Shown: positions 12,294 to 30,728 of the stretch, piece by piece
Position numbering within the stretch: the first letter of the stretch is position 1
How the letters are laid out: the number at the start of each line of letters is the position of its first letter
Origin: Cyanophora paradoxa CCMP329
Taxonomy: Eukaryota > Plantae > Glaucophyta
DNA: 64,000 nucleotides
Direction of reading: 5' to 3'
NCBI GenBank assembly: GCA_004431415.1
Contig: QPMI01000449.1
Location: forward strand, 62,001 to 126,000
The notes under the pieces: model-generated
What the model saw: the letters and a program-made list of their open reading frames with translations, nothing else
Told to the model about the DNA's origin: nothing
Database searches by the model: none
Program-made: the position numbers and the translations under genes

Positions 12294-14509
12294 GGAAGGG
12301 AGGGGGGTACGGAAAATTTGCGGTAGCGCGACGATTACGGCAGCGCGGCGGGCCAGGCTTCCCACCCGTGGGTGCCTGATAACGCCGCGTGTCAAGCTGC
12401 TCGGAAAGTCGCGCGCCAGCTCCACCCGACCCCCGTAGACCGACAACGCCAGCCAGCCCAGCCGAGCGCGAGCCGACAGCCGACGCGGGCACCTTACCGT
12501 CCAGCATCACTGCCGAAGCCGACAGCCCGCCCCCGGAGCGACGTGGAGCCCCGCCGACCTCGCCATGACGCCGACGCTTTTTGAATATCAAGGACCTTGC
12601 CCGCGCCCCGCGCGGGACATACGGATAGCGCGCTGCCACCCTAGATCTTCCGCATAGCGTCGCAGTCCTAAAGCGTGCGAGCGACCACCTCGACTTCGCC
12701 CGAGCTCCCGCCATCGCCGCCCGGCCACCCACACGCCGCCCGCCGCATAGCCGATGCCCGATGACCGCCAGCTCTCTAAGATGACGCACCCGCCGTCGAC
12801 GTCGCGCGCCGCCGCCACTAGTACTGTCCCTCGAATGCCGCCGTCATGCTGCAGGCGCCGCGCGCGCCGCCCCATCCTTACAGAACGTGCTCGCACGCCT
12901 GCAGATCTCGACCTGCATCTTGACCTCTCTCCTCCGCCTCGAGCTCGCCGCGCGACGGGGCCGTCGGCGCCGTCCGATGTACAACTACGGCGGGGTGCGC
13001 CCACGCCCAACTCCCTAGCGCCCCGCGCCGGTCCCTCCCCCGCCCAGAGCCCAGGCCCCGCGGGCCCACGCCCCCGCCCCCTCTCCCCCGGCCTGGGCCC
13101 AAAGGGCGCCCACCCGGACTCCTCCTCCCCGAGGCCGGTACAGAGACGTGTACGCTCGGTCCCCCCCCCCCCCCCCCCCCCCCGGGGCCAGACGAGGCTC
13201 GCCCAGACCCGGCCTCCAAACCGGCCCCTGCCGCCGGTGCCAGCGCCCCGCCCCCGCCCCCCGGCTCCAGCGCCCGCCCCCGCCCTCCGGCTCCAGCGCC
13301 CCGCCCCCGCCCCCGGCTCCAGCGCCCCGCCCCGCCCTCCGGCTCCAGCGCCCCGCCCCGCCCTCCGGCTCCAGCGCCCCGCCCCGCCCCCGGCTCCAGC
13401 GCCCCGCCCCCGCCCTCCGGCTCCAGCGCCCCGCCCCACCCTCCGGCTCCAGCGCCCCGCCCCGCCCTCCGGCTCCAGCGCCCCGCCCCCCCCCCGGCTC
13501 CAGCGCCCCGCCCCGCCCCCCGGCTCCAGCGCCCCGCCCCCGCCCCCCCGGCTCCAGCGCCCCGCCCCACCCTCCGGCTCCAGTGCTCCGCCCCCGCCCT
13601 CCGGCTCCAGCGCCCCGCCCCGCCCTCCGGCTCCAGCGCCCCGCCCCCCCCCTCCGGCTCCAGCGCCCCGTCCCCGCCCTCCGGCCCCCCAGCGCCCCGC
13701 CCCCGCCCTCCGGCTCCAGCGCCCCGCCCCGCCCCCGGCTCCAGCGCCCGCCCCCGCCCCCCGGCTCCAGCGCCCCGCCCCCACCCTCCGGCTCCAGTGC
13801 TCCGCCCCCGCCCTCCGGCTCCAGCGCCCCGCCCCGCCCTCCGGCTCCAGCGCCCCGCCCCCCCCCCTCCGGCTCCAGCGCCCCGTCCCCGCCCTCCGGC
13901 CCCCCAGCGCCCGCCCCCGCCCTCCGGCTCCAGCGCCCCGCCCCCGCCCTCCGGCTCCAGCGCCCCGCCCCCCCCCCTCCGGCTCCAGCGTCCGCCCCCG
14001 CCCTCCGGCCCCCCAGCGCCCCGCCCCCGCCGCCCCCAGCGCCCCGCCCCCGCCCTCCGGCTCCAGCGCCCTGCCCCGACCCTCAGCGCCCCGCCCCGCT
14101 CCCGGCCCGTCACCCTCCCCGCCCGCCCCGCCCCCGCCCGCCCCCAGCTCCCCGACCCCAGCGCCTCACCCCGCCACCCTCCAGCGCTCCGTGTACCCCA
14201 CTCCCTGCCCAGCGCTCCGCGTACTCCGTGTCCCCCTCCCTACGCCTCGCCCCCGCCGACCCCCAGCACCCCGTGCGCCTCGCCTCCCCCCTCCCCCCCT
14301 TTTTTCCACAGGGCCAAGGACACCAACGCATCAGGCCCTCCTAAAGCTGCAGATAGATAGCTCACAGCTAGGATAAGATAGCAGGACGTCTTCCTTCTAT
14401 GCCGCAGAGCATTTGCGCTAGCCTAGGTGCCCCCCCAGTCGATGGCTGCGACGGGGCGGCTGTTGTTGATCTTAATACGAACATTGCCCGGTTGGGCTTT
14501 TGCCAAAAA
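12294..14509 (+). mobile_element. Non-autonomous non-LTR retroposon candidate (~2.2 kb) with a central GC-rich VNTR
   Basis: Flanked by an exact 15-bp direct repeat ATCTTCGAGATTCAT (12279-12293 and 14510-14524). The 3' end is ...GGGCTTTTGCC followed by a short A run abutting the second repeat. No RT or endonuclease ORF. Confidence 0.7.
13240..14070. repeat. GC-rich minisatellite, unit ~CCGGCTCCAGCGCCCCGCCCCGCCCT (~24-28 bp, roughly 30 copies)
   Basis: Tandem reiteration of ccggctccagcgccccgcccc with variable C-run length; the long Pro- or Gly-rich ORFs here are artefacts of the repeat. Confidence 0.95.
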
Positions 14510-16875
14510 ATCTTCGAGATTCATATGCATTGTAAATCTGAACGAGTTCGTTTCAGAGGTTTTAACGGAGTTGCAAACTTGCAATTGCAACTTGCAACTT
14601 GCAAGTCCGACCTCCCGGAGTAGGGGTGCGGCTTGCCGGCCAAAAAGTCGGCTTAAGCCAAGCCAAGCCCCGGGATCTCGCGGTCAAGCCAAGCCAAGCC
14701 GGTCGACCGGCCGGCCCAAGGGCTTGGGCTCCCGGCGGGGTCAAGCCCTTGGCCGGGCTTGCGGCAAGCCTGAGGGGGGGTACCGTTTCGAAAGCCATTC
14801 GCACCGCAGCGAAATGCTTATATTTAGCTTCGAATTCACAAAGAAACGCATGTACATATACTCTTATCATCTTTTGCGCAATTGTAATTATAACGAGAAC
14901 GCGCGGCCGCGGCCGGCCGCGCGCGGCCGTGCCGCGCCGCGGCACGCGGACGGGCCGCGGCCGCGCGCGCGAGGGGTACCGGTACCGGTATACGTACTTA
15001 TACGCACGTGTGCGCGCGCGCGTCTGTTAATGCACGTTGCCGTCGCAGGCTTATAGCTTAAGCTTCTTATCAGCTTCGATTCGAATGCGCTGCAGGCGCG
15101 CAGCTGCGTCCGGCACCCCCCTCCGACGCCCTCCCCCCTCCCCCTCCAGGGCTTGAGCCGGCTTGAGCCAGTCGGCCTTGGGGGAGAGCGCAGGCACGCT
15201 GTGTCTGCGCACCATCAGCTGATGGGTCGGCGCTGCGCAGTGGCGCGGGGCGGGGCGACCGGCGGCGCTGCTGCGGGCGGACCATCAGATGCTGGTTTCC
15301 ATGGAACTGCGCGACGGCGACCGTCGAGGCGAGCGCAGAGGCCTTCAAACGACAGAGTGCGCACCAAAGGATGCGTAGGCTTCACGCGGAGGCAGCTGGG
15401 CGGCGCTGGAGCCCAGGGCGGCAAGAATGGTCAAGCCGACCTGTGGGTGGTGCTTCGCAGAGCGGGACAACGGCGCCGATCTGTGGGCCGCGACCGAGAC
15501 TGCAGCTTACAGGCGCAACCAAGCTTCGAAAGCGCCAAGCTTCAGGCGCGTAGGGGAGGGAGCAGAGAAGGCGATTCCGCTGGGGTACCCCCTTGCGGGC
15601 GATGCGCGCCGGTTCGCGTGACTCTACGAAGCGCCGTGTTCGCGCCGGTTGGGCAGAGCTAGCCGAGCCGGGGACCGGCCTCCCCGTCGGCTTGCTGGCC
15701 GGGCCGGCCCCCTAGATTTTCGAATATATATTTTCACCACCTGTCTCCAAATTTCGTGCACTTTTTACGCCTCTTTTTAACCTTTTTAGAGAAATATCCA
15801 AACTCGACGACCCATTCAGGCGACCAATCAAATCGTACCTCAAATAGGGGTACGGAGTAATACGCGCTGATTTTCGTTGTAAGACTGTTTCACCCGCTGG
15901 GCTCCGGTCCTCCGGAGTCCGGAGTCGACGTCCGGACTCCGGAGGCTCCGGTGACTCGGCGGTGACTCGCCGGTGAGTCGGTGACGCCCGGTCCAAGTTG
16001 GCTCCAAGCCTCCAACTCCGAGGCCAACTTTGGCAACTCTGGCGCCGGCCGGGCCAGTGGCCATCATGGGCCGATTCATGGCATGGGCAGCGATGGGCTC
16101 CGTTGTTCAACGGTTGTTGAAGACGTCCGTTCGCGACTCCGATTGCAATCATTGAATTGCAATTGCAATTGCAATCGCGATCGCGAGACTCCGGCCCAGT
16201 CTCCGGCCCAGACTCCGGGCCGGCCGCCGACGTCGCTCCGAGCTCGAGCCTCCGGATCCGCGGCCGACCGTCGGACTCGCGGCCGCGGAGAGCCGGCGGA
16301 GGCGGCGGCCTGCCAGTGGCGGCCGGACCGACGTCGACGTCCGGCCCGGCGGATCGGACCGTTTTGGACCGTATTGGACGGCGCGCGACTGGGCGACGGT
16401 ACTGCCAGGCTGGTAGCCTCAGGCCCTCAGCCTACTAGCCTGGCACCGCGGCCGGTTGACGAGTCGACGACGACGTCGACACTGACTCGACAGTCGAGTC
16501 TGAGTCGACTCGACGACGAGAGTCACGAGACGACGATGACTACGTATACTGGATATCGATGATCTCTGGATCGATGGAGTCTCATCATGGAGAGCTAGAA
16601 ATATTTAGTGGGCTGTATATTTATATATAGTACATATAATGTTAAATGTACGTTTTGTATGGGCGATCTACTAAATATTTCCCAACTGCTAAAGCCGAGA
16701 ATTTGTAGGGGTAGTCCCGCCGGGCCGTCTCCGCCATACAATTGCAAAATTTTAAAACCCCGCCGGCCCGGCCGGGCCGGCCCCCGCGAAGACTGACCTA
16801 CTAAAGATCTACCAGCTAAAAGTGGCAGTTTTAGCGAAGTTCTGATATTTTTCTGTACTAAATTAACTAGTTCTA

Positions 16876-17602: not shown

Positions 17603-18191
17603 TAAAGGCTGCCTGGCTTCCCCTAGGCGTCGGCTTCCTAGGCTCCTAGCTATATAGGAATCCTAGCCCTCAGCTGCCTGCACTGTGCACTGCACTGCAG
17701 CAGCGACGCAGCGGCCGGGCGGCAGCCTGAGGCCCTGAGCACTCAGGCACTGCAGCAGCGTTTGGGACGTAGCCTCGCGCCACAGCCACAGCGCAGCGCG
17801 CCGCAGGCTAAGTTGCAGGCTTGCAGCATCGCGGCCGCCCGGACCGGCCGTGGCTTCAACCGCGCGCGCGCAGCGTCGGCGGCCGGACCGGAGGCGCGGC
17901 CACCGGGGCCTGACCTATAGCTCGGCCTGCACCGCGGCCAGCATCTGGGGCCAGCTGCAGGGAGCTTGCAACTAATCAACGGAGAAGCCCATTTCCAAGC
18001 TCAAGCTTATAATTAGCTACCGGAATAGGGAATCCGGGCTGTGGGCCCCGCCTCGCCGCGGCGCCGCAGCTGCTAGCGCATATATAGCGATGGGTGATGA
18101 CATACATAATCATAGGGATTCGCGGGCGGATGCCGCAGCTACGCAGCCTGCGCATGCATGTGCAGCTGCAGCTGCAGGCTTAGGGCAGCAG

Positions 18192-21100
18192 ATGCATATG
18201 CATGCATATGCGCAGCGGATTCGGAGGCCACCCCGGGTTCGCGTAAACAAGAGCGCCAGCTCCAACGAAAGCGCTCTGCTGGCCATCGGCCTTGTGCTGC
18301 TTTGCTGCAGGCTGCAGGCAACGGCGGCTCAGTCAATCACCTTCACCTCGCCCTCCATCTCTCTCAATGGCTCCGCCACCGCGCCTACCGCTCGTATGAC
18401 ACAGGTGCGAATCATTGAATCTCTTTCCATCTTTCCAAGAGGTTGCAACTGATCATGAGCTGCGGCTGGCGCAAGCTTTAATTTTTATAAGCTTCAGCTT
18501 AAGCCAGCTAGCTATAGACGCGAAGCTATCAGTAACTCGCTTGGTGCTCAGGGCGTCTCCATCGGAAGCACCCTGTATGTGATGGGAGGCCGATGCAACA
18601 ACGCCGGATCTCTTGGGACATGCTCAGACCCGTACTGGTCCTTCACGTGCAACACCAGCACCGGTGCGCTGCGCTGATGCAGCTCAGATCAAACACCGGT
18701 ACCGCAAGCCAATGCGCCGGCGCCGCGCAGATTGCAGCGCAATGACGGCGACGAAGCTCACCTTCACCGGCGGTTCGTCGGAAATCGAGAGGAGGGTGCG
18801 GCGCTCGCCGCGACGCGATTCAGCGATGCACGCAACACGGCGCCGTTGACGAGGACTGCCGCTGGCGCAGAGCAAGGCGGCGGTCGCGACGGACGGCTCC
18901 TCAACGATATGGAGTGCGCGTTGGCCGATGCTTCCCTATATATATATAGCTATATATCCGAATTCGAACAGCGCCGCGACTCAATAGCCGCCGCGTTCGT
19001 CGCAGCGCACGGTGGAACCGCGTCAGGCGTAGAGGCCGGGAACTTCGACAAATTCGGTCCGCTCCGGCCTCGGGCGTGGCCATGGGCCGCCAGCAGCCAC
19101 GCGCACGTGCGGCTGCGAGCCGACACCCCGCGGCCGCCCAGACATAAGCACGATGACGCGGACTGGCTTGACCGCAACAACCTACGCTCGCAACGCCCAT
19201 TGCATGGTCCGTCTCTAGATCTGTTAACGTTGCTGCCTTCCGGGATTCGGCGGCGCTCTGGAAAATCCATCGGCTGCCGCTCAGCTGCGCCGCAGGTGTA
19301 CTACTTGGGCGCGCTGTACGTCACCCTCGGCTGGGGGAACAGCACAAGTGCGCATTGCAATTGCACACGTCCCAGTTCGTGCCTCTCCCAACGTGTAACT
19401 CTCGTGCGCATGCGCTGCAGAGAGCAGCTCCGGCGGGTTCCAGAACGGTGCGCACGGCCGCGGAGCGCAGCGTCTCGCGCTTTCTGTCCTCTCGAGCTCA
19501 TCCAAACCGAGCAGACTTGTGGAAGTACACCATCTCTACCCAGACGTGGAACTACGCGCTGATCGAGACGGACTTTAGTCGCACTGCGCCGCGCCCGAAG
19601 GAGGGCGCCGTGTGCGCGGTGTTCGGCTCCGTCCTGTACACGTGGGGGTGAGCCTAGCCTCTAGATTTCGAAGGCCCCGGCCCCGTCTTGCGCTCGGCAC
19701 CAGTAAGTATATATATCTGACAAGCACTTTACAGCGGCCAGTTCGTCAGCCATGCATGGTCTTTTGCAACCGATAACACCCTTGCGTGCGCTGTGCACGT
19801 GTCTCCTTGCTTCTTTGTGTGTGCATCTGACGACGTTTTCGGTCGCAAGAACGGTTGATTTGAGCGCCTCTTCCCCCGCGTGGACGCTTGTCGCCACGCC
19901 CGCCGTCGCCCCGTCTGCGGCGGCCTTTGCATGGTGCTTATAATTAGGGCCCGAGAACCTCTTTAGAACTTTCCCAGCCCGATTGAAACCTGACAAGGGC
20001 TTGTCACTTTGTCGTCTACTCATGATCAGGAGCTGGGTGCGCAGCTTGCCCCAGTACCTCCTTCCCCTGCAATTTCGAATTTGCGCTAACGTTACCTACC
20101 GTGCCATGGATCGCAGGCGATATCTGCAAGCACGCTGGTACGCTCCGGGATCTCACAGCTGAAGCTTTGGCTCGCTCTTCAATTTGCGTTGCTGCTGAGA
20201 GCTCGTTTGTTTCGCCAGATCGTGGCATGGGGACAGGAGTCTTGGGCTCTGTCAACCAGTGCGCCCATATGCATTTCGTCCACGCTGCTCGTTCATGTCG
20301 ACTCTCCCCTCAGACTGCGTGTCGGAGGGCAAACACTGGGTCCGGCTGGCGGCATCGGGGGCACCCACCAGCTTCAGTGCGCCCTGCGTGCATGGGGACC
20401 CGCTGCTGTCACCGCGACGTCGACGTCTGACCCGTGCCGATTTTGCTTCGGCAGTGGGGGCGAATGCCCAGCGCTTACAGAGCGGCCCGGCTGGGATACT
20501 CTTTGGGGGTACGACCAGCGAGAATTCGGCGACGAGCGCCTTGGCCGCTTCCTACTCCGCAACCGGTGCAGAATTCGAACTTGCCCCTGATCGCGAGTGC
20601 ACGGGGCCATCGCCTTGCAATTGCTTGGAATCTGATCGCGAGGGTCACTGCGCCTCGCGCGGCGCGCAGTGACGGGGTACACGGAGACGTGCTCGGGCTC
20701 GCTCCCCGCGCTCGGGTTCAACTCTCGCACTGCTGCGCTCTCCGGCTCCAGCACGGCGCCTTCCGCTCGCGAGACTCAGGCACGGTTCTCGCGAGCTCGT
20801 GCATGCGTATATACGATCATGAGCACAAGTCTTTAAAATTGATGATCGCGCCTCGCTGATCCAGCCCTTCTCGCGTAGGGTGTCGGGATCGGAAGCACTT
20901 TCTACGTGATGGGAGGTCGATGCAACAACGCCGGAGTAATCGGGACCTGCACAGACCCGTTCTGGTCCTTCACGTGCAACACGGGTTCGCTGTGCCGACG
21001 CGGCTAAGACATCTCAAACACCGCAGGCCGATGCGCCGGCGCCGCGCAGATTGCAGCGCCTTGACGGGGACAAAGCTCAACTTCACTGGTGGCACTTCAG

Positions 21101-24100
21101 ACATCGAAAGCACGGTGTGCCGCTCGATGGTTTTTCAGCGATCATAATTTGCACGGCGCCGTTGACAAGAAATGGCGCAGAGCAAGGCGGCGGTCGCGAC
21201 AGACGGCTCCTCAACAATATGGAGTGCGCGTTGGCCGACGCTTCCCTGTCCGACAGCGGCGCATCTCAGACGCCGCCGCGTTCGCCGCAGCGCACGGCGG
21301 ATTTAAATCGACGGAGACCGCGAACTTTGATACCTTCGGTCCGCACATATATATGCATCTCGCGATCGGGCCGCCGGTCGCCGCGGAACCGAGCTGACCT
21401 CTTGATAGCCGTGAACGCTACGACGGTGGTGCGGACAGGCCTAACTGCAACGACGTATGTTCGCAACTCGCACTGCATGGTCCGGCTTTGCAGCTGCCTC
21501 CCGACCCCGCACGCCATTTGCTTCCGCCGACTCAGTGAGCGGCGCGCAGGTGTACTACTCGGGCGTGTTATATGTCGCCCTCGGATTCGGGACCAGCACG
21601 AGTACGGGGACCCGCCCCGCATGTGAACCATTGCGATTGCGTGTTCGCACATGCTGAACACCACATTTCTTTGCGCTACAGAGAGTGCCTCCAACGCGTT
21701 CCAGAACGGTACGCATGCTTGGCAGCGCTAGCTGCAGCGCCAGTTGCCGTGCACTCTTTGCCCTCTAACGATCATCCAAACCGAGCAGACCTGTGGAAGT
21801 ACAACGTGACCTCTCAAGTGTGGAACTACGCGCTGATCGAGACGGACTTTAGTCACACTGCGCCGCGCCCGAAGGAGGGCGCCGTGTGCGCGCTGTTCGG
21901 CTCTGTCCTGTACACGTGGGGGTGTGCATCCAGCTCTTGAAATTCAATCAATACATCTCTGTGCTTTAAATTTTCTGATGAGACTGTGCTGAAATGCCAC
22001 GTTAGGGGCCGATACAAGGTCACCGGATCTTCTTTGTACTCGTACGACGCAACCTTAGCGTGCGTTAACGTTGTGTCCTTCTGAATTCATTCCGTGTGTC
22101 AAACTGACTTGCGAGACGCCAGAACGGTCGATCTGAGCGCCTCTTCCCCCTCATGGACTGGCATCGCCACGCCCGCCGTCGCCCCGTCTGCGGCAGCCTA
22201 CGCGCGGTGAGCGTGGCCACGGCAACGCTTTGAAACTTTCCCAGCCTAGCCGAAACACTAACGCGAGATCGCCGTGCTGACCTTTCCGTCATTGCAGGAG
22301 CTGGGTGCGCAGCTCGCCCTGGTCCTGCCCGCCCGCGCTTTAATTTTCCGAATTCTCTCGTACACTTACTTTGCCTACCATACGGCGGAGCGCAGGCAAT
22401 TTCCGCAAGCACGCTGGTGGGCTCCCGTGGCTCAAGCTTTCGCTCAATCTTCTTACTTTAATTCGCGCTGATCACAAGGAATTGTTCGGTTTAATAGATT
22501 GTGGCGTTCGAGAGTGAGTCTTGGGCTCTGTCGACCAGTGCGCCCATTGTACTCTTAGTGCTCAAGGGGTGCCACTAGCGCTGGCCAATACTGAGGTCGA
22601 CCGCGCTCACACAGACTGCGTGTCGGAGGGCAAGCACTGGGTCCGGCTGACGGCGGCGGGGACCCCCAACACGATCAGTGCGCCTTGCCCGGACTCGCTG
22701 CTTTCACCCTGGCGTTGACTTGCATGCTTCCTGTGTTTCGCAGTGGGGGCGCAGGGATCTGTCTCTGTAACGGTTTCCCCTTCTCTCATCGTCTCCGCTG
22801 GGGTGCTTTTTGGGGGTACCACCCGCGAGAACTATCCGGCGAACGCCTCCGCTTCTTTCTATTACACGACCGGTGCGGCTTATGCCGACCAGTAGCTTTT
22901 GCCCGAATATATCCTGACTACGGGTACGGTCCGTGCTGCTTGTGGAATGCGCAGTGTCGGGGTACACAGAGACATGCGCCCCGTCGCTCTCTCTCTCGTC
23001 CAAACCGACTTCCGCCAGGCCGTCGTCGAGCCGTGCTTCACAGGTACGTTACTCTAGCTATATAGCTATATATAGCTTCGGCTATCGCAATTGAATATGC
23101 GATAGCCAAACCGTGGCTGACGTGGTCTGCGCATGCAGAGCATCACTCTCGGCGATGCAGTCTACATGATCGGAGGAGATTGCGGCGGCTCCGTCTGCTC
23201 TGACCCGTACTGGTCCTTCTCGTGCACGTCTGGTGCGCATTTGTGCGCGAGCGGTCGGCCGATTGCACGGACCGACACCATGTTGCGTTTTACAGGCTGC
23301 ACCTCCATCAACGCCACGCAGCTGACGTTCACTGGATCCGGAGGCACGTCGGACGTCGCCAAGAGGGTGCGGCGCCCGTGTCTCATTGGTTCTTGCAGTG
23401 ATTTGCACGTGCACGGTGCTTTTGACGAGAAGTGGCGCAGGGCAAGGCGGGCATTGCAACCGACGGGGTGAAGATGATATGGAGTGCGCAGACGCCACGG
23501 CTGCGCCTTGCATATATATATACAGGCGCTGCGCATGCTGCTCATTATCTGCTGCTGCTCAGCACACGGCGGAATTGTAGGCAATGACGAGGGAAAGCAG
23601 CTCGATAGCTTTGGTGCGCGGCCACCACAGGCGCCTCGCAGCTGCAGGATTGAGGGATTCGGAGCATAAACTTCCGGCAGACGTATCGACGAAAGTATGG
23701 ACGAATCTCGGCGTGACAAACTTTACTCGCAATTCCCACTGCATGGTCGGGCTCTGCAGCTGCCTGCCGGGATTCAGCTGCGCTCCATCGGCTGCCGCTT
23801 AACGGCACCACAGGTGTATTATTCGGGCGCGTTGTACATCGCGCTCGGTTACGGCACCGGTCCCTGTGCGCCTCACCTCATAATCATCCGATTCTGAGCC
23901 CACGTCCGCAATTCTCACACTGTGGGCGCAGGGAACCCAGCTGCTGCAGACCGGTCTTGGCAGAACGGTGCGCAAAACCCATGCGACGTGCCACGTGGCT
24001 CCCCGTCTCGATTTCAGCAAATAGATCTCTGCGCTGCGTGCAGACCTCTGGAAGTACACCATCTCTACCCAGACGTGGAACTACAAGCTGATCGAGACTG

Positions 24101-27100
24101 ACTTGAACCGCGCGGCGCCCCGTCCGAAAGAGGGCTCGACATGCGCGGTGTTCGGCTCTGTGATGTACACTTTCGGGTGCGCCGTTGCTACCAGGCTGGG
24201 AAACGAGCTTGGGCTCTATATAGAGGATGACTGGTCCACGGCATCGCACACGGTACCAGTAACTTGCGCGGTACAGAGGCAATTGGAAAAGTCCCGCATT
24301 GGACGAATGGTTTAAGTATGATTCGATGATAGCGTGCGTGCTTGCAATCATTCACGCATTCACGCGAGTGCTCGCAATGACAACACAACTCGACGGCAGG
24401 ACGGTGGACTTGAGCGCTTCATCGCCGTCATGGGCGGCGGTGGCAACGCCGTCCAACGGGCCGGCGCCTCGTACCTACTCTTGGTGCGCTCGAGCTCGCT
24501 TTTCCGCCCCACCAGGCGCGCTTTGCCGTCTCGTTGAATTCCGGTTGCAGGAGCTGGGTGCGTAACGAATCAGATCCTTCACATACAGACGATTCCTCTC
24601 GCCCCTGCTGTTCTAATCTAACCTTTGTCGCCCGTCCAGACCGTTTCCTCCAGCGCGATGGTTTGCTCTTAGCCATTTCAATTACATGCACGGCTTGAGC
24701 CATTAATATTGAACCGCGCCTCCTCAGGTTGTCCTCCAAGGGATTCACAGCAACGGCAAAGTGGCGGATGCGCCGAGTACAGCCAATGCATGGGTGTTCC
24801 GCCCGAGTTCGTTCTCTCTCTTGTAATTATAATTTCATAATTGTTCATCACAGCTCATGATCAAGCCTGCTGTAAGCTTAAGCCCGCGCTCAGACTGCAT
24901 ACCGAAGGGGACGCATTGGGAGCGTCTGTCGACCGTCGCGGTTCCAAGTAGATGGCGTGCGTGGCTTTGGCGCCGCCGCTCCATTTCCGCAGCATTAACG
25001 CAACTCTGCTTGCATGCAGACGGCTCCGAGGGATACCTCGCCAATGTTGGAACCGCCGTCGTCTTCTCTTCGAATTCGGATCGCAACTTCTATTCTTCCA
25101 CAAGTCTGCTTTGCCCCAATGATCCTAACGTTTCATTTCTTTCCCTGAGCGGTATCATCCAGCTGTGATCGCGAGCGGGTGTCCCGGCGACCCAACTCCC
25201 AGCCCGTCACCGAGCCCGTCACCAAGCCCGAGCCCGTCGCCGAGCCCGAGTCCGAGCCCGTCGCCAAGCCCAAGCCCCTCGCCGAGCCCGACGCCCCCGA
25301 GCTCTGCTCAATCCAATACCGGCGCCGCGACTTCACCGACGCCCTCGAGCTCCCCAACGTCCTCGAGTAACAGCAACGGCAACGCTCAGCCCACTGCCGC
25401 GCCCTCCCCCTCTCCGTCGCCGTCCGGCTCCAGCACAGCGGTTCGCAATTCCCGACCCCCTTCCCGGCCCGTACGCATGCGGCCCGGCTCAAAGTCGACC
25501 GTGCGACACGGCACCGGCACCGGCAGGCGACATCGACGGTGCCCGTGGAATACGCGACGCTGGAGCTCACGTTCGCCACGTCGGCGTGCTCCGCCTTTGT
25601 CGCCTCGTTCAACGCAGAGGCCGTGCGCGCGCCCGTCTCTCCATCGATTTCGAGCCTGCGTCGGCGCCGCTCATGATCACCCGCTTGCACACGCGCGCGC
25701 AGTGGCTCTTCGAGCTTTTCGCAAAGTCCTTCCCTGCAAGGTCTCCCACGGAGCGCGCCGCCATTGCTCTGCAGGTGGCCTCGCCCGACCCCGCTCGCCA
25801 TGTCGACGTCGACTACCCGCATCTCTCAAATTAAACTCGCCTCGCCCCCACAGACCAACCTTGGGACGCTCCGCTGTGGCTCAGTTATCGTTCCCGTGAC
25901 CCTCATCAGGTGCTATAGCTACCTGCGCCCGGCGCCGCTTTGGCCGCGTCCGTTGACGTCGGCGGGACCCTCGGGCAGCCCCGCCTCCGGCTCCTTGCAA
26001 TTGAACGGCCGCGCCTACGAGGCCCTTTCCTTCCTCGTTAGCGGGATCCAGGCGCGCGCGCCGTTTCCCATGGCCCAGGCCGTCATGCCATGCACGCGCT
26101 GATGCGTGCCGTAAACCGCAGAACAACATCAAAGCGGGCACCACAATCGCGGGCCTGTCCGCCACATCGGTCATGCAGGTGCAACCGACGAAGATGTCGT
26201 GATCGCGATCTGCGAGGCCGAGGGCTTCAATCATGAAGGCTTAACGCCGGCTTTCGCGCAGATCGCCTCTGGAAGCGCTGAGGCTTCCGTCGGTGCGCGC
26301 CGCCAGCACACGCCCAGTCACCCCTCTACCTTCATCGCGCTGACGCCGTCGCCAACGCCGCGCGTGCAGACGCGAGCGGGAAGCTGACTTTCGTCGCGGC
26401 CTCCACGACTGTCATGGGCACGGGCACGGGCACGGGATCGACCACTCCCGCACCGTCGCCCTCGCCCTCGTCGGATTCGACGGTCATCATCGCTGCGGTG
26501 GTCGGCGGCGTCGGGGGCGCCCTCCTCCTCGGCGGCCTTCTGGCCTTCTACTTTGCCTACTGGCGCCGCCGCTCGCGGGCGTCGCCGAGGGCCGTGGCTC
26601 CGGATCCCGTGCGCACGGACCGGCCCTCGCGATCGACGCGGCCGAGTCCGAGCAACCGCGTACGCTCTGCAGCTGTTGAAGCCGGTCGCGGCCGCGGATC
26701 CGGAGGCGGTAAAAGTGGAACCTGCCGCGGCAAAGGTGGAGACGGCAAAGGCGGAGCCTGGAAAGGTTGCGGATCCGGGTCCGGCAAATATAAAGGTGGA
26801 CGTGGACGGTGGCGGCGGGAGCGCGCCCGTTTCACACGGCGTGGTGCGACGGACGGACACCGTGTCTTCCATGGAGGACGGCGCGTTCAGCGACAAAACC
26901 AAGCTGCCGAGCGCCGATAAGGAGTGGGACGCTTTCGTGGTGCGCCCCGGCCCGCCGCCCTCCACATTACCAGTAATATTTTTTCGATGGGCCCCGGGGC
27001 TTTTTCCTGTCGCCGAGTCGGCGTGTTATCGATATCGATGGGCCGAGCTCGAGCCTGTCAACAGCTGACGCTAGCGCGGCCCCCCGCGCGCAGTCGTACT

Positions 27101-28507
27101 CGCACAGAGACTCCGAGCGCGTCTTCGCGTACGTGGACATCCTCGCCAAGAAGGGCCTCAAGATCTGGCGCGCCCCAGCGTATCGCGCGGCTCGGCGCGG
27201 CCTGCCACGATCCCGCCATCGCTGACGCCCCGCCCCCGCGCGCAGGATCGACCGCGAGCTGGCGACCCAGACGGGCTCCCGCTGGATGGAAGTGATCGGG
27301 GTGCGCTTACGCGTGGCGTGCGGCGCCCCCATAAATTTTGAGATTGCAGACGCGCTTCGAATTCGCTGCTCTTGGCTGACGCTGGACCGCAGCAAGCGAT
27401 GGAGGCGAGCGAGGTCTTCATCTGCTTCATGAGCAGAGTGCGTATGATCATGAGCGCGCGGGGTCGCTATTGGGGCTGCGGCTTGCGCAGCGCTTCCTAC
27501 TGGTTTCTATGACCAACGCTTGTTATGATTAGAGTCTTCATTGACCTGTGTTTGTTTCGCGGCCCGCGCAGAACTACTTCGCCTCCCAGAACTGCGACGA
27601 CGAGCTCCAGGTACGATCGCGACGCTCCGAGGCTCGCGCTCGCCAGCGCGCGCCCCGCCGACCTGCCCTGTACCGGTACCGATGCCAATGCATATGGCCA
27701 ATCGCGCGCAGTACGCGCACCACATCCTGCGCATCTCCAAGTTCCCCGTCTTCATCGAGGACCCGGCCACAGTCGACCTCCGCACAGACCACAAGGCGCG
27801 AGCCGTCCCCGGCCCGCAGTCTAGATCTAGATTCTGTCCAATCTTGTCTGACGGCCACTGCAGATGATGCTGACGGTGATTGCTATCTCGCGGCGCAATT
27901 GCAAGATCTAGAGGCAGGGTTGGCGCTCCCGATCGCGAACTGACGCGAGCCGCGCCGCAGAGCGTGAACTGGACGGTGCAGCCGAAGGGTACCCGGGAGG
28001 CCATCACAGAGTCGTGCGAAAAGCTGGTGCGACCTCAAATTTCCTTCATGGCCTCTTTGGATTTTCGCGCTGCACTGACGGGCGCGCCCCGCTCTTCGGC
28101 AGTCTGTGGCCTTGGCGGGGCAGATCAAGGCCAACAGGGAGAAGCGCGCGCGCGAGGCGGCGGCAGCGGCCCTGTCGCCCACGCAGAACGCCCCCCCAAG
28201 GGTGATGCCGCCGCACGGCGCTGCCATGACGGAACTCGATGCGTCGCGTGCGCACGACCCGGCGCCGGCGCCGGCGGGCGTCGTCGGCCCCGACCTGCGG
28301 CCGCGGGACGCGCACTCGGGCTGGGCGGATCGCATCGAGCAGGACGAAGAGGCGGTGTCTCTCGGCACGGCGCGCACGCCGGCGCCGCGGGCCCCCGCGG
28401 CCGTGGGCCCCGACTCGGACCTGCATCGGCGGGACGCGCGCGAGGGCTGGGCGGATCGCATTCTGCAGGACGAGGAGGCGGTGCCTCTCGTGGAGCCGGA
28501 TATCTAG
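18192..28507 (+). CDS. Single-pass membrane receptor: signal peptide - 3x Cys-rich Kelch-like module - (Ser-Pro)n stalk - SEA-like GSVIV segment - TM - TIR domain (>40 exons)
   Basis: Signal-like ALLAIGLVLLCCRLQATAA|QS. Each module has Kelch-type motifs: LYVMGG/FYVMGG/VYMIGG, YYxGxLYxxLGxG and DLWKYxxxxQxWNY...APRPKEGxxCAxFGSVxYTWG. Then PSPSPS (25195-25300), RCGSVIVP (25872-25895) and TM VIIAAVVGGVGGALLLGGLLAFYFAYW followed by RRRSR. The TIR domain reads WDAFV|SYSHRD...GLKIW|IDRE...GSRWMEVIG|QAMEASEVFICFMSR|NYFASQNCDDELQ|YAH...FPVFIE. Stop TAG at 28505-28507; start uncertain (18090/18192/18198). Confidence 0.88.
25195..25300 (+). repeat. Coding (Ser-Pro)n repeat, extensin/HRGP-like stalk
   Basis: agcccg/tcgccg/tcaccg reiterations translate as PSPSPS... 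with synonymous codon variation, consistent with coding constraint. Confidence 0.85.
26925..27770 (+). other. TIR domain (TIR_2 type) of the receptor, split over 6 exons
   Basis: Box-1 DAFVSYS, the W-x-D strand, GxxW, hhhhS-xx-Y-xx-S-xx-C-xx-EL with Glu at 27602-27604, and PVF. Confidence 0.9.
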
Positions 28508-29183: not shown

Positions 29184-30728
29184 ATGCAGACGATCGCGCC
29201 CGCCCTGCTGCCTCGCGCGGCCCCCGAGGCGAAGCTGAGTGCCCGTCGTCCTTCGCTGCAGGGCGCGCCGCCGCCAGTCCCCGCGCGCCCGCACCCCCAC
29301 ACCTGCACGGCGCGCTCTGCGCGCGATATATACGCACCTCTGACTCGGGCCGGGTGGCGCCGGCGCGTACGCGTCAGTATGGGACAAGGCGGCGCTGATG
29401 TACGCGAGGCACATCGCGCCGGTCACGAGGGAGTTCTGCGCGGACGCCCTGCCCCTTTTGCTGAAGAAGATCGAGCTCGGCAGCATCGATCGGCCCCTGC
29501 GCGCCCTCGACGTCGGCGCAGGGACCGGCGCGATGACGTTCCTGCTCGCCGAGGCGCGCGTCAAATTCTGACGGCGCGCAAGGAGTATTAATGCGCGCTG
29601 GCTGAGGTTTTTGATTTCGCAGGCCGGCCATGAAGTGGTCGCGACCGACATCTCGCCCGCATTCCTCTCCCGGCTGCGCGAAAATCTCTCTAGCCTGCAG
29701 CCGGAGGTCCGTGAGCGCGTCACCGTCGCCGACGCTCGCGACGGGCAGGTGCGGCCCTGATCAAATTCGAAGCCGTAGAAAATTTGAATTCAAAGTTTAC
29801 GCAGGACCTGGGGCCCCTCGCAAATGGCCGCTTCGACGTCGCGTCCGCCGCGTTCGTGTGCATGCACTACGAGAACCGCGTGAAGGGCATCCGCGAGCTC
29901 CTTCGCGCGCTCCGCCCCGGCGGCGGCGCGCTCTTCCTTTCGTGGATCTCCACGATCCCGCCGCCTCTTCTGATCCCCGACGCGTTCCGGCGGGCCTTTC
30001 CGGACCGCGAGCTGCCGTTGGGCGGCCCGGGCGCGCCCGCGCCGCTCTCGATGGCGAGCGTCGAGCAGACGGAGCGCGAAATTCGCGCGGCGGGCTTCGA
30101 AGACCTCGAGGCGAGCGTTTTCGCACGGAAGGCGATTTTCGCAGCCTCAATTCTTTCCCTGCGAAATCGTCGTCGCAGACACGGGTCTTCAAGCGGGCGG
30201 CGTCGTTCGGAAGCCGGGGCCAACTTGTGGGGAACGGGCACGGGACCGTTGCAGCTGGCGCCACGGGGCAGGCCTGCAGCATGCTCCGCAACTGCCCAAC
30301 CTACACATTCGTACGTCCCGCACGATCAATGCAGTCTCACGATCATCTGTTTTAAACTGAATTCTAATTAAATCTATTAATTATAAAGAAATTAAACGAG
30401 TCTGAAGAAAGCGCCTGAGCGTGCGCATATGCATGCGTGCGCAGGTGGCGGAGTCGCTGGCGGGGCCGGACGAGGAGGAGCGCCTCTGGGCCGCCGTCTG
30501 CCAGGCGCGTTAAGCAGCAAACCATAATAAGCTATAAGAACTATAAGTTTATGTTATATATACTTCTTATCAAAATTCGATCGAGCTCGGAGTTTTGATT
30601 CGCACATTTTATGAGTTCGGCTCGATCAGGAGCTGGAGGGGCGGTACCCCGAGGGCCCCTTCGAGACGCCCCTCGACGTCACCTGCGTCACCGCCCGCCG
30701 CCCCCTCGAGCTCGAGCCCTCGGTCTAG
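29184..30728 (+). CDS. Class I SAM-dependent methyltransferase (Methyltransf_11/25-like)
   Basis: Motif I LRALDVGAGTGAMT, then VVATDISPAFL, motif II RFDVASAAF and motif III IRELLRALRPGGGALF. Last exon ELEGRYPEGPFETPLDVTCVTARRP...V*. Start approximate. Confidence 0.88.

Follow-up and report, generated by a model that had tools for sequence, protein, structure and literature searches.

Membrane receptors that carry a TIR domain are known from animals, in which their ectodomains consist of leucine-rich repeats (LRR) or immunoglobulin (Ig) domains, while the TIR proteins of plants and bacteria are mostly soluble enzymes. Extracellular Kelch propellers, in turn, are found in attractin and MEGF8, which are single-pass proteins with no TIR domain. 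Here we describe a locus from the glaucophyte Cyanophora paradoxa CCMP329, a member of an early branch of the plastid-bearing lineage, in which Kelch propellers and a predicted TIR domain occur together on the two sides of a putative membrane helix. The locus lies in a window of 64,000 nucleotides (GenBank assembly GCA_004431415.1, contig QPMI01000449.1, positions 62,001 to 126,000 of the forward strand), which is GC-rich throughout (58-74%) and by which all coordinates below are numbered.

Overall structure of the locus

We estimate at roughly 60% the probability that the locus at 18192-28507, on the plus strand, is a single gene coding for a type I TIR membrane receptor with Kelch propellers. 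In our best gene model, roughly 55-60 small exons, all in the plus orientation, contribute a total of about 1450-1500 codons. The N-terminal half of the predicted protein would consist of a signal peptide, three disulfide-rich six-bladed Kelch propellers and a Ser-Pro stalk, which is probably O-glycosylated; the C-terminal half would contain a small juxtamembrane domain, a membrane helix with a basic stop-transfer signal, an 82-aa linker, the TIR domain, and a repeat-bearing tail. Direct observations, presented in the following sections, comprise the pieces themselves with their order and reading frames, the selection acting on the exons of the propellers, the Kelch fold as seen in a paralogue, and the TIR-like collinearity of the cytosolic exons. 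A preliminary description of this DNA had listed the same series of parts, and we found all of them on the plus strand within 18192-28507 and in the order it gave. The receptor layout that it proposed holds with respect to this order and to the ectodomain, in the exons of which neither LRR nor Ig signal was detected by Pfam searches of single exons and open segments; the single transcript that it assumed for 18.2-28.5 kb, as well as the membrane topology of the product, we infer from the arrangement of exons and charges.

The splicing pattern was predicted from consensus sites, matching phases, GC content at third codon positions (GC3), and two public protein models. An exon parse obtained by dynamic programming is reliable only where it is backed by one of these models, P0001 (see below), or by conservation; the mini-exons that it placed in the later half of each module were discarded as artefacts, together with an intron within the last exon.

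Kelch propellers in the ectodomain

Direct-repeat analysis revealed three copies of a long unit, spaced by about 2.27 kb, between 18.5 and 25.0 kb, which are recognisable only as short blocks. These repeated blocks are exons, with 40-85% identity at the protein level, and the introns between them have diverged. Module 1 (18552-20806) is composed of about 14 small exons, the last of which continues into the leader of module 2 (20879-23043); the last exon of module 2 likewise continues into the leader of module 3 (23139-25045), which is the most diverged of the three and has its exons a and b fused into one (23139-23366). Between the exons of modules 2 and 1 amino-acid identity reaches 80-85%, again with diverged introns. 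Over eight exon pieces, the ratio of non-synonymous to synonymous substitutions (dN/dS) between modules is 0.25-0.29 (0.26 for module 2 versus module 1) at a dS of 0.45-1.3, indicating that purifying selection keeps the module copies in the proposed frames.

The repeated exon with the best conservation was turned into a profile and compared with 1.84 billion protein representatives; among the 37 matches only two were specific relatives, both of which are EukProt proteins of Cyanophora paradoxa. The first, P0001 (tig00020693_g13025.t1, 142 aa), is spliced exactly from seven exons of this locus (b-h of module 1, 18742-19648). The second, P0007, is a 396-aa paralogue located on another contig, which spans one whole module and is 39-50% identical to the exons of the locus. 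When P0007 was used as a query in a homologue search, only P0007 itself was returned, and a search of the ESM Atlas with it yielded generic Kelch clusters only, none carrying TIR.

P0007 matches the Pfam family Kelch_KLHDC2_KLHL20_DRC7 (PF24681) with 53.5 bits, over the curated cut-off of 50; P0001, with 40.5 bits (E 2.5e-10), stays under this cut-off, as it comprises no more than about 2.5 blades. When individual exons or open segments were submitted to Pfam, Kelch matches were the only ones and were weak, the exon h of module 3 alone yielding an E value of 5e-5, and weak matches to Beta-prop_ATRN-LZTR1 were also seen. The AlphaFold2 model of P0007 is all-beta (predicted template-modelling score, pTM, 0.70; mean predicted local distance difference test, pLDDT, 64), and Foldseek placed it closest to KLHDC2, the Kelch domain of LZTR1, KLHDC3 and YjhT, with E values of 1e-14 to 1e-13; its matches have template-modelling scores of 0.6-0.75 and comprise six-bladed Kelch domains, including that of Keap1, with E values ranging from 1e-14 to 1e-11. 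The match of this model to Kelch propellers agrees with the expectation that the modules fold as beta-propellers and, together with the Pfam matches of P0001 and P0007, shows that each module corresponds to one whole Kelch propeller. The modules had been described as three in number, Kelch-like and Cys-rich; each of them is an entire six-bladed propeller of about 370-400 aa, and not a single Kelch repeat.

Each boundary between modules is spanned by one exon, which combines the module end (…GYTETC…) with the leader of the next module (…SARETQ). The same kind of leader terminates exon 1 (…ARMTQ), and in P0007 it is continuous with the first blade. On reading the translations, some twelve conserved cysteines can be distinguished per module, along with a number of N-x-S/T sites, and both features fit an extracellular location of the modules. 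Two circumstances detract from the picture of the ectodomain: the Kelch fold was examined on the paralogue P0007 and not on the joined sequence of the locus itself, and exon boundaries are uncertain in the second half of each module.

The predicted TIR exons and the C-terminal tail

The predicted TIR domain is distributed among 7-8 exons, which with 13-31 codons each are too short to be reported by Pfam, by phmmer on PDB or by HMMER, and we scored these exons singly. Every ungapped position of each exon was evaluated on a profile of 142 positions, derived from 120 TcpC-like proteins, all of which possess both PF01582 and PF13676; the profile is narrow in that it covers TcpC-like proteins only, with tcpC from E. 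coli CFT073 as the reference. In the reference stretch from CFT073 (12764-15301), tcpC has as neighbours a macro-domain gene and another gene with a TIR domain, the latter in convergent orientation.

Exon E1 (26673-26939) codes for the 82-aa linker, which is rich in Ala, Lys, Glu and Pro and ends in KEWDAFV, corresponding to the start of TIR with its strand A, followed by the donor GTGCGC; for its last seven residues the best diagonal is at profile positions 5-11 (10.3 bits). Exon E2 (SYSHRD...KGLKIW, 27094-27179) falls on positions 13-40, also with 10.3 bits, the next diagonal scoring 1.1, and an alignment by hhalign put it in the same place (P 0.0037). E3 (27246-27300) is defined by phase and splice consensus and was placed by reading only, with a small gap relative to the TcpC profile. 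E4 (…EVFICFMSR, 27393-27437), at positions 55-69 (6.5 bits), lies immediately ahead of E5 (NYFASQNCDDELQ, 27572-27610), which occupies positions 70-82 (7.1 bits). E6 (YAHHILRISKFPVFIEDP..., 27712-27804, its 3' end being uncertain) has a CGCAG acceptor and a GC3 of 0.93, and resembles the sequence of a transcribed paralogue. E7 (SVNWTV...ESCEKL, 27961-28026), which has a CGCAG acceptor with CTGAC upstream and a GTGCGA donor, is placed at positions 113-134 (5.4 bits).

Chained collinearly on the profile, the whole exons E2-E7 reach at best 23.0 bits. Random peptides of the same lengths from the window gave 4.8 +/- 2.4 bits, with none of 3000 reaching this score; runs of six other exons from the same gene gave at most 9.8 bits; and shuffled exons gave 9.1 +/- 3.0 bits, with 23.0 bits being reached in two of 3000 cases. 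Adding the end of E1 raises the chain to 30.8 bits, a score which was reached in none of 2000 trials in each of two controls, and, among permuted exon orders, only by those preserving the native order. In profile coordinates E1 abuts E2, and E4 abuts E5; the DxF[IV]SY start, the G-x-x-I-W strand and the S-x-x-C-x-x-E-L helix hold their expected positions. The Glu residue of NCDDELQ in E5 (codon 27602-27604) comes to profile position 80, which is E244 of TcpC. The RefSeq product name of TcpC is 'NAD(+) hydrolase', and we take residue 244 to be its catalytic glutamate. The presence of a TIR domain is thus suggested by exon-by-exon collinearity (empirical p about 1e-3 or lower) and by one hhalign match, and the sequence would be best explained as a TIR domain of the TIR_2, or bacterial, type, with the catalytic glutamate apparently kept. 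The collinearity test is valid solely because splice sites, phase and GC3 had defined the exons in advance.

Several searches weigh against this assignment. Searched singly, with E values of up to 10 admitted, no TIR exon reaches the curated Pfam threshold; phmmer of E2 against PDB sequences produced no match; hmmsearch with the TIR profile, with filters turned off, on the open segments of six frames gave nothing meaningful (0.8 bits for E2); and hhalign comparisons of E4, E5, E6 and E7 with the TIR alignment were uninformative, a match of E4 having been rejected as spurious. Scanning both strands of the window with the TIR profile while leaving splicing free proved powerless and non-specific, since background chains reach 65-92 bits. 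The donor of E6 is also uncertain, the candidates being confined to weak GTC donors near 27751, 27793 and 27805. A tblastn search of the window with TcpC and with a second TIR protein from CFT073 gave no match. The lack of any exon above a curated threshold, the non-specific free scan and the two shuffles in 3000 that attain the observed chain score could mean that there is no TIR domain in the cytosolic part at all, and that short exons resemble TIR motifs by chance or through their composition. We nevertheless consider this very unlikely, as four to five independently defined exons follow the native order and abut on the profile, the motifs are in their places with a Glu on E244 of TcpC, hhalign locates E2 correctly, and other exons of the same gene do not exceed 9.8 bits.

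The last exon (28103-28507, GC3 0.89) codes for a 134-aa tail and ends with a stop codon at 28505-28507. Within it, a tandem duplication of 126 nt (28235-28486, 71% identity) gives rise to two 42-aa repeats with the pattern PD..R.RDA..GWADRI.QDEEAV.L, for which no Pfam match was found.

Exon 1, the stalk and the membrane helix

Exon 1 (18192-18404) includes the start codon, a basic n-region, the hydrophobic core ALLAIGLVLLCC (Kyte-Doolittle maximum of 1.9 over 19 residues) and an A-x-A-like site, and is followed by the donor GTGCGA; an alternative ATG is located at 18090. The exon ends in the leader ...APTARMTQ, which precedes a propeller, and its junction with exon a (TQ/G) agrees with the uninterrupted sequence of the paralogue P0007.

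At the other end of the ectodomain, the stalk exon (25163-25470; acceptor CAG, donor GTACGC) takes the place that is held by exon n in modules 1 and 2, and codes for a Cys residue, about 16 Ser-Pro pairs, and a stretch rich in Ser, Thr and Pro. The preliminary description had let the stalk be followed by the helix and TIR; this series is indeed present, but about six small exons between stalk and helix had been skipped. The first three (25527-25622, 25703-25774 and 25854-25909) and the last three (25979-26036, which is the least certain, 26122-26178 and 26262-26292) have consensus splice sites, matching phases and a GC3 of 0.6-0.88. The segment that they encode (25527-26292) amounts to about 100-120 aa, is rich in Thr, Ser, Ala and Val, is predicted to be extracellular, and gave no Pfam match.

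The membrane exon (26370-26608, GC3 0.86) begins with a Thr/Gly and a Ser/Pro stretch and encodes the helix (26483-26563, Kyte-Doolittle 2.3), immediately followed by RRRSR (26564-26578). Judging by the positive-inside rule, this single helix would leave the C-terminal TIR exons on the cytosolic side.

One gene or two

We count 14 introns of 56-168 nt between the stalk and the stop codon, with matching phases and with exons of GC3 0.6-1.0 in the chosen frames. Their donors are mostly GTGCG[CT], their acceptors are all [CT]GCAG or CACAG, and CTGAC is often found 15-25 nt upstream; the splicing of P0001 makes use of the same type of sites (GTGCG.../...GCAG). Over the gene as a whole, GTGCG[CT] occurs 34 times on the plus strand versus 9 times on the minus strand, and CTGAC 22 times versus twice. 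The proposed introns have a GC content of 0.56-0.80, and the flanking sequences 0.57 upstream and 0.49 downstream. All parts are joined by short consensus introns with matching phases, which argues for one gene, and no space is left between the Kelch and TIR parts for a spacer containing a terminator and a promoter. The introns of the locus, most of which measure 56-230 nt, have unusually uniform signals, which could serve to mark strand and genes elsewhere in this genome.

An arrangement that we regard as rather unlikely is that of two genes on the same strand, with a secreted or wall-bound three-propeller glycoprotein ending within the Ser-Pro stalk or shortly behind it and a small membrane TIR protein starting from the ATG at 26414, of which no more than a short N-terminal stub would lie outside. 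This ATG, situated just ahead of the helix and in frame with it, could indeed begin such a protein, no RNA contig bridges the Kelch and TIR parts, and the public annotation already splits the locus into fragments. The weakest links of the chain are found exactly in this interval, and consist of the exon 25979-26036, which was taken from the parse and has an uncertain boundary, and of the donor at 25909: with this exon included all phases agree, and with it left out a donor at 25896 also restores the phase. However, the 0.9 kb between stalk and helix are filled with six open exon-like pieces, which have consensus sites, matching phases and GC3 values of up to 0.88, so that the largest gap is 85 nt with the exon 25979-26036 and 212-226 nt without it. 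The introns proposed for this interval have a GC content of 0.59-0.73, like other introns and unlike the flanking spacers (0.49-0.57), and if the frame of the stalk is read on without splicing, it runs into a 140-aa Arg-rich tail.

Transcripts and existing annotation

The locus is not covered by contigs from four RNA-type runs of Cyanophora paradoxa, in which we found only low-complexity matches of 21-30 nt. RNA contigs from runs X5 and X8 match the last 24 nt of E5 (27587-27610), after which their E6-like sequence differs: the transcript of this paralogue ends E5 at the same base (27610) and continues as FAHHQLRIAK, as compared with YAHHILRISK in the gene described here. Since the paralogue transcript shares the E5/E6 junction, the exon junction and the TIR family are real, and the family is expressed.

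The presence of a TIR paralogue with the same junction in the RNA contigs, from which the locus itself is absent, would also be expected if the locus were silent or in decay, and the working members of its receptor family lay elsewhere in the genome. Such a state seems quite improbable to us, given that the module exons have retained a dN/dS of about 0.26 after a dS of 0.45-1.3, during which their introns diverged beyond recognition, and that all 59 predicted exons permit an open parse with GC3 staying high. Moreover, a contig can demonstrate that a transcript is present, but its lack does not demonstrate the reverse, and induction of the receptor may require a challenge.

The lack of coverage nonetheless speaks against the proposed gene, as does its annotation. 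The only public model at the locus is the 142-aa fragment P0001, which stops at an unspliced donor: its terminal TGA is part of a GTGAGC donor that closes the last exon and was left unused (the model occupying 18742-19651). Among proteins of 124-395 aa, no model with exon E1 was found. Multi-exon receptor genes are probably fragmented throughout the current Cyanophora annotation; because such genes are split into fragments, their number is probably underestimated.

Downstream of the locus, the next gene on the plus strand is represented by an open segment (29398-29571) with a methyltransferase-like glycine motif (LDVGAGTGAM).

Possible function

In the predicted receptor, the propellers would bind a ligand, which may be a glycan or else a multivalent surface, and receptors would thereby be drawn together. 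The cytosolic TIR domains of the clustered receptors would then self-associate, which may lead either to cleavage of NAD+, resulting in a nucleotide signal or in NAD+ depletion, or to recruitment of partners. Both ligand binding and enzymatic activity are properties that we infer for the product from its domains.

In a broader and tentative interpretation, which we would call possible and not probable, glaucophytes have built their own class of surface pattern receptors, with Kelch propellers sensing a ligand and passing the signal to a membrane-tethered TIR NAD hydrolase (NADase), independently of Toll-like receptors and within a large and shuffled TIR repertoire of Cyanophora. If this is true, the Toll-like layout would have been reinvented in a glaucophyte from other parts, and TIR signalling of the enzymatic type would be capable of coupling straight to the cell surface. 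It would then also offer a testable entry to environment sensing in a unicellular alga, a field that is almost unstudied.

Comparison with known systems

Full-text searches of the literature yielded no description of membrane receptors combining Kelch and TIR, or of TIR genes in Cyanophora or other glaucophytes. The cytosolic part of the locus resembles TcpC from E. coli (TIR_2, PF13676): between strand A and helix E, the successive TIR exons follow the order of the TcpC family profile, and the E244 position is shared. TcpC, however, is a bacterial protein that is secreted in soluble form and has no receptor ectodomain, and the identity is low, with small scores at the level of exons.

With respect to its overall layout, the predicted protein resembles animal Toll-like receptors in having a signal peptide, a large repeat-built ectodomain, a single helix, a basic stop-transfer signal and a C-terminal cytosolic TIR domain, and ligand-driven clustering of TIR domains would be the likely working principle in both cases. 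It differs from them in its three Kelch propellers and Ser-Pro stalk, with no LRR signal in any exon, and in its TIR domain, which resembles the bacterial TcpC type, appears to keep the NADase glutamate, and is followed by the 134-aa repeat tail; no MyD88-type partners are known from glaucophytes. Members of the interleukin-1 receptor family likewise combine a non-LRR ectodomain with a membrane helix and TIR, but they have Ig domains instead of propellers and are limited to animals. In view of the lack of LRR and Ig signals and of the glutamate-bearing TIR of the bacterial kind, the product of the locus would belong to neither the Toll-like nor the interleukin-1 receptor family.

Attractin and MEGF8 offer a parallel to the ectodomain, as they display a Kelch propeller outside the cell in a type I single-pass protein. 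No Pfam match to CUB, EGF, PSI, C-type lectin or laminin-EGF modules was obtained with any of the exons or open segments searched at the locus. The predicted Cyanophora protein is further set apart from attractin and MEGF8 by having three propellers in place of one, and by the TIR domain that it would carry.

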